Position numbers and translations under genes: made by a program | NCBI GenBank assembly: GCA_965637545.1 | Contig: OZ281498.1 | Coordinates: 8,122,001-8,186,000 of the forward strand | DNA from: Phallusia mammillata | Lineage: Eukaryota | Length of the DNA: 64,000 nt | Reading direction: 5' to 3' | Shown: one piece after another, positions 3,492 through 33,400 of the stretch | Position numbering within the stretch: position 1 is the first letter of the stretch | Layout of the letters: each line of letters starts with the position of its first letter | Notes under the pieces: generated by a model | Told to the model about the DNA's origin: nothing | Database searches by the model: none | What the model saw: only the letters and a program-made list of their open reading frames with translations

Positions 3492-11840
<8,349 letters not shown>

Positions 11841-12539
11841 TTTGATATCACAATCAAAATTATTCAGTACTTACTAAGCAATTAGCAGCTCATTAACATG
11901 TCTATATTTCTGTATGAAACAATGGTATTACCACAAGAATTTGTTTTACATTTATGATGTCTTAGCGTGTAAAAAACAATCTTTTACAGCAGGAGGGGAA
12001 ATCCATTGCAAATATTGGGGGTCTGTTTTAACTTGGAGAGTTTGATGACATAATGACAGTTGTTACACACATTAGGCAATTACAAATGCATAGGAGTTCC
12101 CTTCGACTAAATATTTTGAGGGACATGTCCCCCAGGGATTTGCACTCATGATTCACAGGGTTTCTTTGTAAGTTTATATTGCCACATACGAAATAGAACG
12201 GCCTGAATATAGATATAAACAGTGACAAGCATTATTAAACATTTAGCAAATGCTAGTGCCATATTCTGTAATGTAATGTCGCTATTGACGTCTTTATATT
12301 GACCATTTTCCTTATGAGGCCTAACAAACTCATGTACATGTATACTGATGTACAGCTGCTTCGAATCTGGGCAAATTTTCTGTTTTTTTCTTCCTGTGCA
12401 TGATGTTCAATTGCAGTGGCATAGCCCTTTACGCTTTAATACTTTATTTTGTGCACAAACTACATGCAATTTGGTCATGTTTTGCACTGTGAAGTCAGGT
12501 TTTAAAGGAAAGAGGGATTAAAAATGGAAGCAATGCCGT

Positions 12540-13400
12540 TTACGGCGTTTACGTCACAAACGTCACTTTCACTTGCAAGAGCTTGACACTTTGACGGTTA
12601 GTAAAGTAATGTAGACAATTATCAGTTATATGTGCAGCGAAGGTACGCAACGTAAATTTCAAGGTAAGGCCAACTAACACGTTTTTTTTTGCATTTGTGC
12701 AAACTACGAACAATTCTGTGAAGCGACAGCGAAAGGATATTTTGTCAAACTGTGTGTTATGAATGTCCCTTTTTCGTGTAATTATTGAAGCATGAAAACC
12801 ATCTGATAGTGACGCTGTGACGTAGAAAATCAAGATCAACAATAGTATGGCCACATGTTAGCTTGCAAAATGGTTTACTTCGAAACACTTATTGATATAG
12901 ATTGAAAGACACTATCTGCATATTATTCAATTACTGAGTTGAACGTTTAGAAATATGTTATCAATTCGTTTTGACCTCTGTTGCCACGGAAATAGTACGA
13001 AGGTTTGCTGCAGCGTATCGTCTTGCTCGTGCACTTGAATAAGCAAAAAGTTCTCGAAAAATGCTTGTGTTGATTGCTTTGTAATGCGCTTAATGAGGCG
13101 ATTTGTGTAAAAAAAAGTTGGAATGTGAGGTTGCATGTATTTTTAGTGTGAAATTTCGAGCCAATAGCAGCGGACTTAGCGGTTGTTTGGTAATAAACAC
13201 GCAAAAACGACAACACGTTTTGTGTGTGTTTTTTCAAAATTCTACAGATTCTGCTATTAATGTAGAAAACGTGACCAAACTGTGTTTACAAGATAACTCA
13301 CAACAGCATATTGACCCCTCCATGTGACTTTACACCGATTCTTTCACGTCACCCGAACATTTATTGTGACGTCACTGATTTGTGACGTAAAATAGAAAAA
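12540..13400. promoter_or_regulatory. Probable bidirectional promoter region between divergent DCAF8 and RPRD2
   Basis: Head-to-head gene arrangement and local CpG enrichment. Several CRE/ATF-like TGACGT(C/A) sites: ttacgtcac ~12549, gtgacgtag ~12817, gtgacgtcac ~13366, tgacgtaa ~13383. Confidence 0.45.
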
Positions 13401-24481: not shown

Positions 24482-27400
24482 ATGGATACTGTAGAAATAG
24501 TAAAATTAGGTATTAGTGAAGAAAACTTGAAAAACCTCGACAAGCACTTTGCAACAAATAGTTACACCTGTGGCTTTAACCCTAGTGAAGCTGATAATCA
24601 ACTTGCATCAAAAATTTTGGACAGTAATCTTAGCATATCTTCATACCCAAATCTACAGCGTTGGTACGAACACATTATTAACTTGGGGCCACACAAACTG
24701 CCAAATTTTGTTGAGGTGTGTAGTATTTTTTATATTAGGTAAAAGGGTTAACATTATCCCGAGCAAAGTTGCTTGAGAAGAGAATATACAGAACATATCA
24801 GCAAAGTTTCTTATTTTTGAGAGTTTGAAACAATTAGGACTTATTGCAAATATATATATACCTGTTAAAAATAAATAAATAAAACTTGGTTTGTGCAAAT
24901 GACCTCAAAGCTTCTCTAGCAAGTGCAGAAAACTGTGGTTTGCAATGTTTGCTTCTTCTCTGAGAAATGTTTCTTCTCAAAATATAACAGGCATGTTAAA
25001 TACTTATCCAGGTTCAGCCAATGTAAATACAATTATTTTATGGAGATACCTTTGTCTTATTTTAAGTGTTTATATTTCCAGGTATCCCACCCAGTTAGAA
25101 AGTTGAGTAATATGGCTGACGTAGATAAAGAAAATGCTACCCCTCCAAAATCTGTTACTCCAAAGGAAAAAAAGCAAAAACAAGCAAAAACAAAAGGTAC
25201 ATATTGATTAAAAAAATAAATATGTGGGTTAAAGTATGTGGCTGCTGATTTTTGTACACATTAAAACATCTGGCCGTGTATAAGTTTGCGCTGGGTTTAG
25301 AAAAAAACACATAAGGTTTTGTTTACATGTGTGTTAAAGAATGCTGCAAGACTCATTACATATATAATTTGGAAATAAATAATTAGGAAATCGATCTAGG
25401 TATTATGCTCCTTAATGCAAACATCTTAATTTTGTATTTGGGAGGGTGGACCTTGCAGTATATTTGAAAAATTTGCTTTATAACAGGCGGAGGTGGAGGA
25501 GCTGGGATAAAAGAAATGCAACCATGGCCAGCTTACATACAGGAGAGACAAGAACTCTACGACAAACTAAAGTTGGAATGTGAGCAAATGCTCAAAGGTA
25601 TTTTTTTACAGCAGAAAAATGAAACCCTGGCTAAAACATTAAATTAAGCCATTCTGCAGAAATAACAAGATAGATTGATCCAAAATATTGCTTTGTTATC
25701 TTGTGACATATCTTGTGACATGACATAATACTTTATTCAGCCGAAACCCTTGGAAAAATTGGTCTTTGCAATACAGTATCCACATAATGTATTTCCAAAG
25801 TTACCAGATTTACATATAATGTCTACATGCGAAATAACACATTGAAAATATAAGCTGCCCTTGACTGCATGTCGCACAATAGGTAGGGTAAAAAACTTTA
25901 TAAGGCCATGGCTTACAATCCAATGAACACAGTGTGTGTAACTAAACTACACTGTGGGTGGAATGCTGCTTCTGTTCACTGTATTAAATTTGAAAATACA
26001 ATTTAAGCCCAAAATACACTGGCTGTGTAAACATTTTCAGAACGCCAGGAGACACAATCTTCACCCATCCAGATCACATTACCTGATGGAAAAGTTGTTG
26101 AGGGCCAGTCATGGATAACCACACCTTACACTGTAGCTCAAGGAATCAGGTGTATTTTACAGTGGCAAATGTATTTTACATTTTTTATAACTGCATAAGC
26201 ATTGATTGATAAGGTTATTATAAGGTATACAGACAAAGTATTCAAATTCTTTACAACACAACAAAAGTTTTAAAAAATTGACAACGAAAATATATATACA
26301 AAAGCTAAAATGTGTTAGGTGTAAATGGTTAAGCACACAAATGCTTAAAATTACAAGTAAAAATAACAAAAGAGAACATTTGGCAATGGTTTTTAGATTT
26401 CACAATACTTGATGAAAAATATGAATGAAAATAGTTTGACATAACCATTTGCATTGATTTTTACTCTTAAGTTCCTTACATGACTGCTGCTTTGTTTGAT
26501 TCTGCTGTGTCAAATTCAACCTCAGTATTTACATTACTGTCAAGCTGTTGGTTATTTTCTACAGAAAATTCTTCTTTACTGTCCCATGCTGCAGGCAAGC
26601 TGTCTTTATCATTGATTGACTTATCGTCAGAAGGGTCTTTCTGCTTGTCTTTCACAGCACCTTGCAACATGGATTCAAAATCACCCAGGATATCCATGTT
26701 AAGTTTCTCCAAGCCAACATGAGGCTCATCGGTCAAACTATCACTGTTTTGTCCTTCATCATTGCTTTCTGCTGGTGATTTTTCTTCTGCAAATTCTTTT
26801 GGAGGGAGGACAAACTCTTTTCCAAGGTCACTGTTGTCTTCAGTTTCCTCAGATTCGCTATCTGTGGATGATTCAGAGTCTTCTTTGTTTTTTTCATACA
26901 CATCAGCAACTGCAATGACTTGATTCTTTTCCTCTTTTGGATTAACCTCATGGATATCTTCATTTGGACCCTGGCTTTCATCGTCCGAGGCATTCTGATG
27001 TTTTGATTTAAAACTTGGTTGCTTGTTAACAGTGGCATAAACTGCATCCTCCAGAGGGTATTGAACTTTTTCCAATTCTTTAGCCACTTTGTCATTGTCC
27101 AATTCACTGGGGGAGTCATCTTTGTTCACATCTTCCTGGTCTTCATCTTCTACGACATTCACTGGTGTGATACTTTCACTTTCTTGCTTGTTTACAGATG
27201 CATAAACACCAACCTCAAAGTCTTCTGGATTTAAATCTTCCAAATTGTAACTACTTTCCATTGCTTTATCCTTTATTTGGGCCGGTGTATCAATTTCCAA
27301 TTCATCGTACACAGAAGGTTTTTCTGAAGTTGTTGCTATGTTGTTTTCAGCATTTTCCCGATCACTAAGACTATTTGCCTCAGCCACACATACTATTGGG

Positions 27401-30400
27401 GTCGCAATACTTTCCAACAAAGGCAATGTTGCATTTTCTGTATTTTCTTTTTCTTGTTCCCCAAGTGACTCCATTGGTTTTTGCATTCCTTCATCCCATT
27501 TTGGGCTTTCCCTCTCATCTGGCATTTCCTGTTCTTGTGCTGTCTCCTGAATCGGTTTCTTGCTTACTGAAGGCCTTTTCTGCAGTTTTTCCTTTGGAAG
27601 ATGGTCCCCATGGTCATAGCTTGCTTTGCTGTTGTACACAAATGCACTGGGAATAGGAGGGCGTTTTGCGAAACTCGTTTCTGCCGTTTCGTGTACATCG
27701 CTTTCTGGTTGCAGAGGCGAAGCAGGACTGGGTGGGAGCATTGATAAGCTTTCTGTAATTTAAAGGAATAACTAACAATTAACAGAAAAATATTACTCTC
27801 TAAATATCTGAGAAAGAAACGAACTATTTTGTGCATAGGCACTCAGCTGTGTGAAACAAAATTTTTAAATTACTGATTACAGCAACTCAAATAAGTTTTT
27901 CCTCCTGTTACCTGGTATATGTTTTTCTAATTATAGATTATGAATTGGAATGCAATAAAGCAATTAGATTAGATTTAGAATCTAATCTAATTTAGAGAGT
28001 GAAATTTTGAATTACTTATCTATATTTCAATGTACTTCCTAATAAGTGGTTTAAGTTGCATGCAGAGCTATCCATGTACACTACCTTTGTGCTTTTTGCT
28101 GAAAGTTGACGGTGGGATAGTGTTGTCATATTCTGATGCTCGTCTCGGTTGTGGCTGCGGAACAACTTGTTGGGCAATCGTTTCATTCCTGTAAGGATCC
28201 ACAACTTGTGGTACCTGCAGAAAAGTTAATTGGAATAAAAAACAAACATTCTCTATGTTTGTGTAGAGCAGGGGTCGGCAGCCTTATACAGTTGCTTAAA
28301 ACCAAGTCCCTTTGGGCCATACTAATTTTTCATGTATGTTTTTGTTCCCTTTACTGTTTATCATGTTGTTAAACCTTCCGAACTTTGGTAGTTATTTTTG
28401 TTAGGCTACTAGTATGCAGAGATACATAAACCAAAATACAACTTTAGGGACATTGATTTCTAATAGACTGAAATCTCAAAAACATTACAATAGTTCCGGT
28501 CACGTCTAAAACTGTGGGCCCGCTAGTCCCAGCACTTGGCACGCCTCATGCAAGTATAAAAACTGCGGGCCGACTTGATAAAGCCGAGGGCATGCCTGTC
28601 ACGTGTCATTAAATTTTGATTTCGACAATATCTGAACGGCAAGCAATGGATATAGTGGGCTCGCAGTTTTTCCTTCCGAGAGACGCGACAAGCACTGGAT
28701 ATGGTGGGCCTGCGGTTTTCCCTCCGAGAGACAGGCCAAGCAATGGATATATAGTGGGTCCGCAGTTTTTATACTTGCTAGAAGTGGGCCTGCAGTTATT
28801 CAATTGCATGGGGCGGGCCAAGTGCTGGGCCAAGCAGGCCAAGTGCTCCAAGTGGGCCCGAAGTTTTAGACGTGACCGCAATAATTCAGTTGTTTGGTTT
28901 TTAGAGTCCCTTATTGAAAAAAATGTCACATATTTAGACTGTTTACCTGTTGGTCATCAAGTTCAGATGCACCAAGAGCTTGATAGATTGGAATATCTGG
29001 TAGTGGTGGGTGTTGTGCTCTGGGTTGTCTTCTAACTGTTGTGTTAACTGGACTGGCAGCTGGTACTGCAAATAGTGTTTCACAATTATGCATTCATGAA
29101 CCTTTATGTTAATGCTGACAGGTAGTTTACTATTATCAAAATGTTAAAACTATTATCACCGGAAAAAAACAACACTTAATTGAAATGTGTTGAAACTGGA
29201 TAAATTTTTTTTTAAACTCCATACACAGATCTGTTCATAAGTGTAACGAGGAAAGCAACTGGCAAATTAGATGTAAAAAGTGACATGCTTATTATTGAAA
29301 TGTTTTAGCAAGTACTCTTGCCATCATCATTGATATTAGGAACCACATCAGTTACACCTGTTTATAACCACTGGATTAAATCTAGCAGAATATAACAGTC
29401 AAAAATTGCCTAAAAAGTGTCATGCCCTATTAATCGACTTTTTCGGCAATCACTGATGATTAAATCTATTTATGATACATTATTTCTGTTCATATAAAAT
29501 GCTTCTTAATGCCTTTTTCCTTTTTTACACTATCTTATATGTCTAATACATGATTCACAACAAAAATGTCCATTTTTAACGCCTTACCTTGAGGTGCATT
29601 TGGAGCCAAATATTCAGCTTCATATGGTGGTGGAAGAGTGCCTAAGTTTTAATAAGTCTTAACATTAGTATTTCATGACATACCAGTGTGGATATTAGTT
29701 TGTGTTTCAAAATACCTTGTCTTTGCAACGATGTATTTATTAGTCTAGGTTCTGGAGCAGTTGGCTGTGTTTCATTCTAAAATACAGTATTTGGTAAATT
29801 GACAAAATTCTAAAATGATAAAATCAACTTCGCATTCATACACTATTGGTTTTGATGCTGCTTGTCAATGTGGTGGGAACACAAGTACTACTGGAATTTT
29901 GTTAGTTGGATAAACAACTAAATTTGGAAAACCAAAGCCATTTATCATGAAAATTGAAATCACACTACAAAAACATAAAAACCTGTTCTTGTAATTCTGG
30001 TTGAAAATCTGGATTTGTCCTTCCTCTATAATACAAGGAATTAAAAAAACACATTTAAAAATTTGCATTACAAGGGATACCTGTCATTGTCTTCTCTTCT
30101 AACTTCGCGTCGAGCTTTTCTTCTGGCGTATTTAATCACCCGTGTGTCCCAGAAAACTGCACTTGTCACCACAAATGACACAACAAATACTGCCCCAGCC
30201 ACTAAAAGAAAAAAAAGCCTGGTATCACAACCTAAAAGTATTATTTTTGCAAATCAAGTTCGAAGATGTAAAAGTACTGGGCTTGTTGGGCTGGTTTGTT
30301 ATAGGAGCATAAAACAGCAACTACATGTGACATATTGCCTAAAAGTCAGCAACGCCATTAGATTTATTAAAATTATTTGTTGTGGATTGTATTTAGACCA

Positions 30401-33400
30401 CTAAGATATATCTGTTATCAATTATCTAAACAAAATTGCAATGTAATACAAATTAAACAAAGCAAATGTAAATCACATTAGGGCAAAACCCTACCTGCAC
30501 CATAAGTATAGTACAAAATCGTCAAAGCAGATGGTTCCAACACCATTTTGTCATGCAAACTTGCTATCACTGTACTTCTCAATAAAATATATCAGAAAAT
30601 TATAAACTGTAAATCTCGGAACAAAAGATCTTTTAAACACAACAATAAAAAATTGCCAGCTTTTATCAAGTTTTTTGTTATGTTCAGAAAAAACTCTCAC
30701 AAGACAAGACAAAAAAACAGACTCTCAAAAAAAAGACTTTGAAAGCTTTGTCTGTCAAATCCCCCTGATGCTATATGGGGTCTGGGTCACATGAACTTTT
30801 TCTCTTTTTACGCTTGAGCAAGTAAAACTCCTCTTTTTTTGTGAGGTGCAATCGTGCGTCAAACTGTGGGTTGTGTTGCAGTTGTGCGATACAAAAATTA
30901 CTGTTGACATGAAAAGTTTCATAAATTGCCATTTGCATACATATATAACACAAACACAAATGTACAAACTTTACTAATGAGGATATAAAATCAAAAATTC
31001 ATTTTTAAATTTTTAAATTCTTACCATTTTTTTGTTTATTTCATTTTTCAACACAAAGATACATTTTTTTGTTTGATGGTGCAGCTATACCTTAAAAAAT
31101 CCTTCTTATATTTATTTTTTCTGTTTTTGCAGTCAAGGGTTGGCTGACAGCTGCATCGTGGCCAAAGTGAACAATGTAGTTTGGGATCTCGATCGACCAC
31201 TGGAGTCTAATGCCAAACTTCAATTGCTCAAGTTTAATGATGATGAAGCACAGGTCTAGTTCATTAACACAAATATCACAAATATAAAAACATGTTTTGT
31301 CACCAATTACGCACACAGATTTCTTAACGTAAAACCAGACTAAAAATATAAGAAGCAAATATACCTGTCACAAAGAATGTTGTATAATAAATATTACAAC
31401 AAAAATGTTAGGTACATGACTGCCTTAATGTGGTGTGCTGGTAATAAATTAACACTTGTATTGTTGTTTTTATAAACAAAATTTAAGAAACAAATCACTA
31501 AAAACTAGGCCTTGGTTTAATGAGATTTTACTAAATTATCCACTACACTTGGTGAATAATTATTTCTATATGAGTACATCAAGTGCTTTTTGTTGTAACT
31601 TACATCTTATTAGATCTTGCTTCTTGGAAACAACAGTTTAATTCACTTTTTTTCTATTAGGCTGTTTATTGGCATTCCACTGCCCACATTCTTGGAGAAG
31701 CGATGGAAAGAACGTATGGCGGTTGCTTGTGTTATGGACCTCCTATCGAACAGGGATTTTATTATGACATGTTCATGGAAGACAGGTAAGAAATCAACCA
31801 AAAATAACAATGCTAATGTTTATTCGAAAAACAGCATTTTTGTTAATTACACTATGTAACAAACACCTTTCTATTGTTTTGATATGTGACTTTCAGACAA
31901 CAAAACTGATAAGATTCTGCTATTTATAAAAAAAATGGTTGCATTTTGACGTGTGTTTTGTTTATTAGAATTGTGTCGGACAAAAATGATTTCCCAGCTG
32001 TGGAAGGAGTCATGAAATCAATTCTGAAAGAAAAACAACCTTTCGAACGATTGGAAATCACAAAAGAAAACCTGTTAAAGATGTTTGCCTACAACAAGTT
32101 CAAAGTAAGCCAACTTTATATTCATAAATTACACCCTAATACATTTTTTGTGTTCTAAAAGGTGCGAATTTTGAATGAGAAAGTCACCACTCCCACCACA
32201 ACTGTATATAGATGTGGACCACTGATTGATCTTTGCAGAGGTCCACATGTTCGGCATACTGGAAAAATTAAGGCTTTTCAGCTGTACAAGGTAGCTAACA
32301 GTTTTGTATTAGATCCTTTGTTCTGAGCAAAAAGACACAAGCCATTATTTGAGTGTAGAAACATTAAAACATTCTGCTGATCGTCTGACAAAAGAATGAC
32401 GACAAAAGTAACTGTTGCAACCTGGTGATGTTTTGCACTCAAATACTGTCTTGTATCTTTTTGCTGAGAATATTTAGAACCATATGTTGTATACCTGAGA
32501 TCCTTTGTTGTTTTTTGTGCGAGAAAATTGCTAAACCAAATACTCTTTCACAGAATTCTGCAACATATTGGGAAGGGAAACAGGATATGGAATCGCTACA
32601 GAGAATTTATGGAATAAGTTTTCCTGACAAGAAGGAGCTGAAACAGTGGCAACAATTTCAGGTCTGCTTGACTAACACAACACAGTAACTTTCTGTTGTA
32701 AAATTACAACAAAAAAGCTTTAAAAATATGTTTTAAAATTACATATTTTTATACAACTGAGTTTCTTTACATAACAAGTACAAAGTAAAATTTTGGGCAG
32801 CACCTACAACTTACATCCCTTTCTGGGCAGAAGTAATTGTTGAGATTTCAGGTGGTAACTGCTTTTTTGTTGTTCAGGATTTGAATATTGTAAGTAAAAA
32901 ATCACAGCTTTTCATAATTTTAAACCCAAGGTAATACTCGGAAAAATCTCAGATGAAACTCTGTATATAAAAAAGTCTTTCCACTAAACATTTTAATGAT
33001 GTTTGTGTTTGTTATAAACTTGATTGTATTCTAGTGACATACATAACAACATGAATAGATGTAAAAAGCGACATGCTTTATTGTTCCAACTTTTCTGCAA
33101 GTACTCATGCCATCATCAGTGACATTATACCCTCCTACTCAGCTGAAACAATGATTATTCTTTTCCATAGGAAGAAGCAAAGCAAAGAAATCATAGGAAA
33201 CTGGGAATGGAACAAGAATTATTTTTCTTCCATGAATTGAGTCCTGGAAGCTGTTTCTTCTTTCCTAAAGGGGCATTTATATACAACACACTCATGAAAT
33301 TTATCAGGGTATTTCTTGCTAAGTTATTTAAAAAAATATCAGGGTTTTATCAATAATATGACACAAGTGAAGTATATTTTTTTTCATTCACATTTTATCA

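Follow-up and report, generated by a model that had tools for sequence, protein, structure and literature searches.

An antisense gene nested in a threonyl-tRNA synthetase intron of Phallusia mammillata encodes a candidate membrane-anchored docking scaffold

The window analysed here is a stretch of 64,000 nucleotides from the ascidian Phallusia mammillata (contig OZ281498.1, positions 8,122,001 to 8,186,000 of the forward strand), and all positions below refer to it. Within an intron of the threonyl-tRNA synthetase (ThrRS) gene, the opposite strand carries a second gene. This nested antisense gene is genuine, spliced, transcribed, and single-copy in Phallusia mammillata. The reading favored here, which we hold with about even confidence, is that its product is a lineage-restricted, membrane-anchored docking scaffold, i.e., a functional analogue of the non-palmitoylated members of the vertebrate transmembrane adaptor proteins (TRAPs), with no detectable homologue among them. 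The plasma-membrane location, the phosphorylation, and all partners of the ascidian protein are matters that we only infer.

The gene consists of eight exons on the minus strand, extending from 30546 to 26476, which join in frame to 1857 nt, i.e., 618 residues with one terminal stop. All eight exons have AG/GT borders (GT-AG introns). Contigs of four public RNA runs were placed on window 26000-31300, and a single contig of 2056 nt (run X3, record 15) contains all seven junctions at the predicted bases (27752|28085, 28214|28947, 29065|29588, 29641|29716, 29776|29983, 30025|30081, and 30201|30495). Subsets of these junctions are present in runs X12 and X1. The junction ends read CT..AC on the plus strand, corresponding to GT..AG on the minus strand, except for one call at 30024/30080 (TC..TA), in which the intron length of 55 nt is unchanged; this odd call is accounted for by a synonymous AGA>AGG change that the haplotype in question carries at 30025. 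The host exons are joined in all four runs across exactly 4983 nt (26150-31132, plus strand, GT..AG), an intron in the TGS-domain region of the ThrRS gene that holds the whole nested gene. Since the runs skip this intron exactly, the contigs represent cDNA. These contigs confirm the proposal of an earlier note that a 4983-bp host intron contains an eight-exon antisense gene for 618 residues. As that note also remarked, a mechanical list of open reading frames (ORFs) contains only the last exon, as an ORF of 421 residues.

The 5′ untranslated region (UTR) reaches at least 30669-30677 (X3 record 15 to 30669; X12 record 13 to 30677), and the 3′ UTR extends at least to 26418. An in-frame stop codon is located at 30594, 16 codons ahead of the ATG at 30546. 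Further upstream exons that would add a large ectodomain had been raised as a possibility; they are excluded by this stop together with the start of the transcript contig at 30669. A 10-codon upstream ORF (30522-30554, minus strand), whose ATG at 30554 precedes the main one by 8 nt, runs in another frame across the main ATG and may damp translation.

The coding part of exon 1 (30495-30546, start codon 30546-30544) encodes a putative extracellular stub of about eight residues and the first half of the transmembrane (TM) helix. Exon 2 (30081-30201) encodes the second half of this helix and the basic juxtamembrane stretch. Residues 1-8 contain no basic residue, residues 8-35 form a hydrophobic stretch of 28 residues (19-residue Kyte-Doolittle mean of 2.2), and about 11 of the 20 residues directly past it are Arg or Lys. 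According to the positive-inside rule, the basic cluster after the TM stretch indicates an N-out/C-in topology in which the tail is cytosolic. The length of the hydrophobic run and the basic cluster directly behind it make cleavage as a signal peptide unlikely. Judged by its sequence, the protein is thus signal-anchored and single-pass, with a stub of ~8 residues, a GxxxG-containing TM helix, and a basic juxtamembrane helix. AlphaFold2, supplied with a three-sequence alignment, modeled one helix spanning residues 5-60 and gave nearly all other residues a predicted local distance difference test (pLDDT) value below 50 (mean 40). The ESM Atlas model (pLDDT 0.39) agrees with it. The tail is acidic, with 124 Asp/Glu versus 62 Lys/Arg residues, and its ~560 cytosolic residues are probably intrinsically disordered. 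Pfam searches with the exon pieces, the full public protein, its Ciona ortholog, and the N-terminal parts yielded only sub-threshold noise (DUF2201_N, ESSS, Vpu, and DUF4381). The layout claimed in the earlier note, namely, a short stub, one TM helix, a basic stop-transfer sequence, and a long acidic tail devoid of domains, is therefore upheld by hydropathy, charge, AlphaFold2, and Pfam. It is the layout of a TRAP: a short ectodomain, one TM helix, and a tail with SH2-, SH3-, and PDZ-ligand motifs in the absence of an enzymatic domain.

Two other readings of this N-terminus were considered. If the N-terminal hydrophobic segment were a cleaved signal peptide, the product would be a secreted, N-glycosylated acidic protein, and the six N-x-S/T sequons would fit such a product. 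However, their enrichment is not significant, the run of ~28 residues far exceeds the h-region of a signal peptide, and there is no basic n-region. Moreover, the dense basic cluster directly after the run is conserved in Ciona, and the AlphaFold2 helix is continuous from residue 5 to 60. A secreted product is, in our judgment, exceedingly improbable. Alternatively, the protein might be a signal-anchor protein of an organelle, either the mitochondrial outer membrane or the endoplasmic reticulum, with a tail whose role is apart from phosphotyrosine, e.g., ion or protein buffering or tethering. Indeed, outer-membrane signal anchors such as TOM20 combine a short N-terminus and one TM segment with a strongly basic C-terminal flank, a layout that the ascidian protein shares, and the twofold excess of acidic residues in the tail would suit a buffering or tethering role. 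The hydrophobic stretch is nevertheless long and fairly hydrophobic, the conserved PPPY and PxxP-Tyr motifs would have no obvious use, and the language-model neighbors described below are mostly plasma-membrane or viral-envelope adaptors. An organelle anchor is therefore considered unlikely.

Searches were made with the exons singly and, at full length, with the public protein A0A6F9DJQ4, while the joined window translation served for coordinates, composition, and shuffles. A word-index search with the last exon returned only this protein, a 618-residue Phallusia mammillata entry (CAB3263260.1, "uncharacterized protein LOC108949706") that shares the exon structure of the window model. It matches the model exactly from residue 1 to 468, and all 12 differing residues lie at 469-617; these are allelic differences that run X3 also shows. 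All Tyr motifs are unaffected by the allelic differences that were seen. The last ~30 codons (26476-26570, minus strand; codons 590-617) are hypervariable between haplotypes, holding 11 of the 16 non-synonymous base differences and nine of the 12 residue differences from A0A6F9DJQ4, and codons 1-247 hold none. Constraint appears to be relaxed at the extreme C-terminus.

An exhaustive phmmer search of 1.84 billion representative proteins identified a sole relative, LOC108949706 of Ciona intestinalis (624 or 625 residues), with E-values of 4e-8 in the library and 1e-18 pairwise, and 35% identity over residues 7-146. Two profile searches added no relative beyond Ciona; one of them was swamped by acidic words, so that 8000 candidates were scored and even the Ciona protein was not returned. 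A search of the Phallusia genome itself revealed no paralog. The Ciona gene (AP043567.1, L001 10001-13289) is also located inside a ThrRS gene, on the opposite strand, and this host contains the Pfam domains TGS, tRNA_SAD, tRNA-synt_2b, and HGTP_anticodon. The host exons that flank the nested gene in Phallusia match the Ciona ThrRS exons at L001 15609-15475 and 9546-9424, which bracket the nested gene at 10001-13289; since the match holds on both sides, the introns are orthologous. The Ciona gene has nine coding exons whose contents correspond to the Phallusia exons, and the first junction is placed alike in the aligned proteins, i.e., after a conserved G-A and within the following Val codon, which the intron splits. 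The reciprocal similarity, the antisense position in the orthologous ThrRS intron, and the shared first junction establish that the Phallusia gene is orthologous to Ciona LOC108949706.

The extra Ciona exon encodes 83 residues of imperfect Ala/Pro/Gly/Met repeats (MAPGA-like) and is absent from Phallusia. Two Ciona isoforms, one residue apart where exons 2 and 3 meet, suggest an alternative acceptor of the NAGNAG type, and older RefSeq models of the Ciona gene comprise only ~100 residues. The earlier note had called the gene hidden, a description that does not hold: the Phallusia protein was already in UniProt and GenBank and its Ciona ortholog in RefSeq. The gene is thus already catalogued, as uncharacterized, in two ascidians, and the TRAP-like reading is a new functional assignment that is unproven. 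No literature was found on LOC108949706, on Phallusia transmembrane adaptors, or on Csk or hemocytes in Ciona.

Conservation between the two ascidians is concentrated near the membrane. Exons 1 and 2, encoding the stub, the TM helix, and the basic region, are 46% identical to Ciona, and the TM helix contains the invariant G16xxxG20 and AVFWDT. Exon 5 (29588-29641, minus strand as for all exons), which carries PPPY, a PY motif of the WW-domain type, and YLAP, shows 56% identity, and both motifs are kept in Ciona. Exon 6 (28947-29065) ends in a block, R-R...PLP..PIYQAL...E, that is orthologous to that of Ciona exon 7 (PLPLDPIYASI), with 45% identity. Exons 3, 4, and 7 are linkers with 22-36% identity. 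Exon 3 (29983-30025) contains NPDF, whose NP part is kept in Ciona; exon 4 (29716-29776) is poorly conserved; and exon 7 (28085-28214) contains PYRNE and EYDNT, which are of the YxN type and weakly conserved. Exon 8 (26476-27752) comprises 425 residues of acidic tail, modeled at low confidence, and the stop codon, and is not alignable to the Ciona tail. Indeed, the last exons of the two species align no better than shuffles (z = -0.5). The invariant set in both proteins therefore consists of G16xxxG20 and AVFWDT, NP, PPPY, YLAP, and R-R...PLP..PIY...A.E at the exon end, and of the four cytosolic Tyr residues up to residue 150, three are conserved. Ciona carries other Tyr motifs, namely, YASI at the conserved PIY site together with YVPM, YEEP, YENI, and YNVE. 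Two MAFFT pairings, Y377 with Ciona Y368 and Y432 with Ciona Y575, were rejected as positional conservation because the distal tails align like shuffles.

If the protein is a docking scaffold, the conserved membrane-proximal module (PPPY, YLAP, and PLP..PIY) would recruit WW-domain (Nedd4-type) partners through PPPY and SH3/SH2 partners through YLAP and PLP..PIY, and the GxxxG helix would serve a TM partner or a dimer. Src-family kinases would phosphorylate the [IV]Yxx[LV] sites (PIYQAL, SVYDEL, GVYASV, and AVYATV), two VYA[ST]VNKQ sites could then dock a Csk-type SH2 domain, and the YxN sites could dock Grb2. The fast-evolving tail would supply SH2-type sites, with two of the Csk type among them in Phallusia. 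Every motif that the earlier note had listed is present in the translation. Four [IV]Yxx[LIV] motifs occur in Phallusia versus 0.20 expected (0/5000 shuffles), and YA[ST][VI] occurs twice in Phallusia (0/5000 shuffles) and once in Ciona (P 0.015). The first Csk-like motif, VYASVNKQ, corresponds to V376-Q383 (27184-27207, minus strand), and the second copy, VYATVNKQ, to V431-Q438 (27019-27042, minus strand). When the copies were compared at the nucleotide and peptide levels, the two cores were found to be two synonymous changes and one Ser/Thr change apart, whereas their flanks are unrelated. This pattern suggests a constrained peptide sequence, not a recent duplication.

Several observations weigh against the docking-scaffold reading. 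In neither species do the generic SH2 classes (YxN, YxxP, YxxM, and Yxx[LIVM], singly or pooled) exceed their frequency in shuffled tails, and Ciona lacks the [IV]Y bias. YDEL, VYASVNK, VYATVNK, VYEK, YRNE, and EYDNT have no alignable counterpart in Ciona, so the VYA[ST]VNKQ pair, the most specific motif set, is lineage-specific as far as the alignments indicate. Accordingly, the expectation of the earlier note that Tyr motifs would be conserved in the same ThrRS intron is borne out for PPPY, YLAP, and the PIY block in Ciona and fails for the distal motifs (YDEL, VYA[ST]VNK, VYEK, YRNE, and EYDNT). The single Cys is residue 315 in Phallusia and residue 424 in Ciona; with no juxtamembrane Cys in Phallusia, there would be no raft targeting by palmitoylation, which agrees with the earlier remark that a juxtamembrane CxxC is lacking. 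Neither the exhaustive phmmer search, which gave no vertebrate match, nor Pfam revealed homology to any TRAP family. The language-model (Atlas) scores discussed below, 0.78-0.90, fall in a range that the tool itself rates as giving leads only. In addition, the motif tests are partly post hoc, and the conservation tests rest on two species and are hence weak.

The main rival draws on the same conserved module. Proteins such as NDFIP1/2, PMEPA1/LDLRAD4, and WBP1/VOPP1 recruit Nedd4-family E3 ligases through PPxY, and the ascidian protein might likewise be a PY-motif membrane adaptor or trafficking regulator whose PPPY recruits such ligases. YxxL/V, NPxF, and the Ser/Thr-rich acidic clusters would then be unphosphorylated sorting signals for adaptor-protein (AP) complexes, EH domains, and PACS-type proteins, and ubiquitination or endosomal sorting would be controlled, either of the protein itself or of a GxxxG-bound TM partner. 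This explanation accounts well for the strong conservation of PPPY, which is among the best-conserved cytosolic motifs and lies 60 residues from the membrane, for the GxxxG TM helix as the best-conserved long block, for the acidic Ser/Thr cluster at ~485-500, and for the lack of enrichment of generic SH2 motifs. On the other hand, CK2-type sites are not significantly enriched, NPDF is kept only as NP, and kinase/SH2 recognition better accounts for the duplicated Y[A][ST]VNKQ and for the [IV]Yxx[LV] bias. A role as a Nedd4 or trafficking adaptor is a possible but not a favored account, and it and the docking-scaffold reading are not mutually exclusive.

A narrower proposal is an ascidian-own transmembrane Csk/SH2-docking adaptor, i.e., either a functional analogue of PAG/Cbp or an ortholog diverged past recognition, which arose apart from the vertebrate TRAP families and was kept in the ThrRS intron since the Ciona-Phallusia split, with a conserved PPPY/YLAP/PIY core and rapidly turning-over SH2 motifs in the tail. 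In this specific form, the proposal is doubtful. The candidate Csk-SH2 sites of the YSSV type, judged by sequence, are YASVNK and YATVNK in Phallusia and YASI in Ciona, and they are not positionally conserved. In Cbp/PAG1, YSSV is the Csk-SH2 site (PMC3492796), and human PAG1 reads ...AMYSSVNKPG around it and ends in ITRL on a peptide array (PMC6277618). CagA EPIYA-A has the sequence STEPIYAKVNK (PMC4011759), and the Csk SH2 domain is bound by phosphorylated EPIYA-A/B (PMC3593179). The Y-[AS]-x-V-N-K of Phallusia matches the PAG1 site, in which the Tyr is Y317, and CagA EPIYA-A at five of six residues each, so the likeness to both that the earlier note had pointed out is accurate (PMC6277618, PMC4011759).

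That likeness, the common layout, and the mixed PAG/LIME1 clusters among the language-model neighbors could also be taken to mean that the protein is a true, extremely diverged ortholog of PAG1/Cbp or of another TRAP (LIME1 or LAX1). This interpretation is very unlikely. There is no match to PF15347, PF15332, PF15234, or PF15050, and phmmer finds Ciona only. No match to PAG, LAT, LIME1, or SCIMP was seen in Pfam, where hits were inspected for A0A6F9DJQ4 up to an E-value of 5 and for Ciona, A0A6F9DJQ4:1-200, and Ciona:1-240 up to 10. The motif is not found at any alignable position of the Ciona protein, CxxC is lacking, and the C-termini are AAVM and TIEL rather than ITRL (PMC6277618). Furthermore, short motifs evolve convergently: EPIYA-type motifs arise in disordered regions in this way, e.g., in bacterial effectors (PMC3593179). 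The homology to PAG1/LAT suggested in the earlier note is thus unsupported, given the absence of a profile match, of CxxC, of YEE[IV] in Phallusia, and of an ITRL-like end, and no vertebrate protein was matched by phmmer. The language-model neighbors are alike for both orthologs, which are only ~30% identical, and include vaccinia A36R, HCMV (human cytomegalovirus) UL135, SCIMP, LIME1, a LIME1/PAG cluster, and C1orf185. As a lead only, this neighborhood points to a resemblance at the level of class, that of N-anchored motif-only scaffolds, and not to kinship.

Outside the coding exons, intron 6 contains a G+C-rich element of ~400 bp (28480-28895), which resembles a miniature inverted-repeat transposable element; its terminal inverted repeats measure 45 nt and its internal units ~49 nt. 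At least 40 near-full-length copies of it, with 76-90% identity, are spread across the chromosomes; the RNA contigs on the intron-6 copy have loose ends, and their reads probably derive from other copies. The ThrRS exons flanking the host intron (26039-26149 and 31133-31254, plus strand) belong to the TGS-domain region and show a protein identity of 73-88% to Ciona. The word depth of this host stretch in the RNA contigs is more than 10 times that of the nested gene, a depth that, according to the tool, cannot rank genes.

LAT, PAG, LIME, SCIMP, and LAX have been described from vertebrate leukocytes, and the recruitment of Csk to membranes in invertebrates is poorly understood. If the reading as a Csk-docking adaptor is true, the ascidian protein would reveal the way in which an invertebrate chordate organizes Csk and Src-family kinases at its membranes. 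Embryos of Ciona or Phallusia would offer a tractable setting for testing an ascidian protein that shares this layout and has a PAG-like Y[AS]xVNK site, and such a protein would bear on how motif-only signaling scaffolds evolve convergently and how motifs turn over in disordered tails. The locus itself is a clean case of a nested antisense gene retained in one host intron across two ascidian families. Function is read here from short motifs alone, and the present value of the assignment is that of a well-founded hypothesis.

PAG1/Cbp (PF15347) is one of the closest known systems. Cbp/PAG1 has one N-terminal TM segment, two juxtamembrane palmitoylation sites, nine Tyr residues, and four YEEI/V sites for the Src SH2 domain (PMC3492796). 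The ascidian protein resembles it in the single N-terminal TM helix, the short ectodomain, the long acidic tail without a predicted fold, the absence of a catalytic domain, the approximately 10 or more Tyr residues in the tail, and, by sequence, the Y-[AS]-x-V-N-K site. It differs in that no sequence homology is detectable, there is no juxtamembrane CxxC palmitoylation, and YEE[IV] does not occur in Phallusia, Ciona having only YEEP and YENI. Phallusia ends in AAVM (window model) or AALM and Ciona in TIEL, unlike the ITRL PDZ ligand, and the Csk-like site is duplicated in Phallusia and has no alignable place in Ciona.

LAX1 has a TM adaptor layout that lacks palmitoylation, with several YxN and Yxx-hydrophobic motifs. 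With this protein and with SIT1 and TRAT1, all non-raft TRAPs, the ascidian protein shares the unpalmitoylated adaptor layout and several motifs of these two types. However, no homology to them is found, the ascidian stub is much shorter than that of LAX1, and the ascidian tail is far greater in length and acidity. There are also no ectodomain cysteines and thus no disulfide dimer; the ascidian protein has GxxxG instead. A list of TRAPs has been published (PMC5033326). SCIMP and LIME1 (PF15050 and PF15332), which bind Csk and Src-family kinases, have a similar short-stub TM adaptor layout, but they are much smaller (~150-300 residues), palmitoylated, and vertebrate-restricted, and show no hidden Markov model match to the ascidian protein.

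Vaccinia A36R (OPG164) and HCMV UL135 likewise have N-anchored tails that act purely via short motifs and are not known to fold; Tyr phosphorylation of A36R by Src/Abl recruits Nck and Grb2. They are the top named language-model neighbors of both orthologs (Atlas scores of 0.83-0.89, leads only), yet these viral proteins are much shorter and are not homologues. The Nedd4-family PY adaptors NDFIP1/2, PMEPA1/LDLRAD4, and WBP1/VOPP1 share a membrane anchor with a conserved cytosolic PPxY near the membrane. In contrast to them, the ascidian protein has one PPxY (two or three in PMEPA1 and NDFIP), no Smad-interaction motif, and no homology, and the NDFIPs are three-pass rather than single-pass proteins. 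Finally, the Ciona DPIYASI and the Phallusia DIPIYQAL and VYA[ST]VNK resemble the E-P-I-Y-A-x-V(NK) of EPIYA-type motifs (CagA EPIYA-A/B and Pragmin). Although Glu-Pro is not strictly kept and the likeness is at the motif level only, the motifs are duplicated and located in disordered regions, as in the bacterial EPIYA effectors (PMC3593179).

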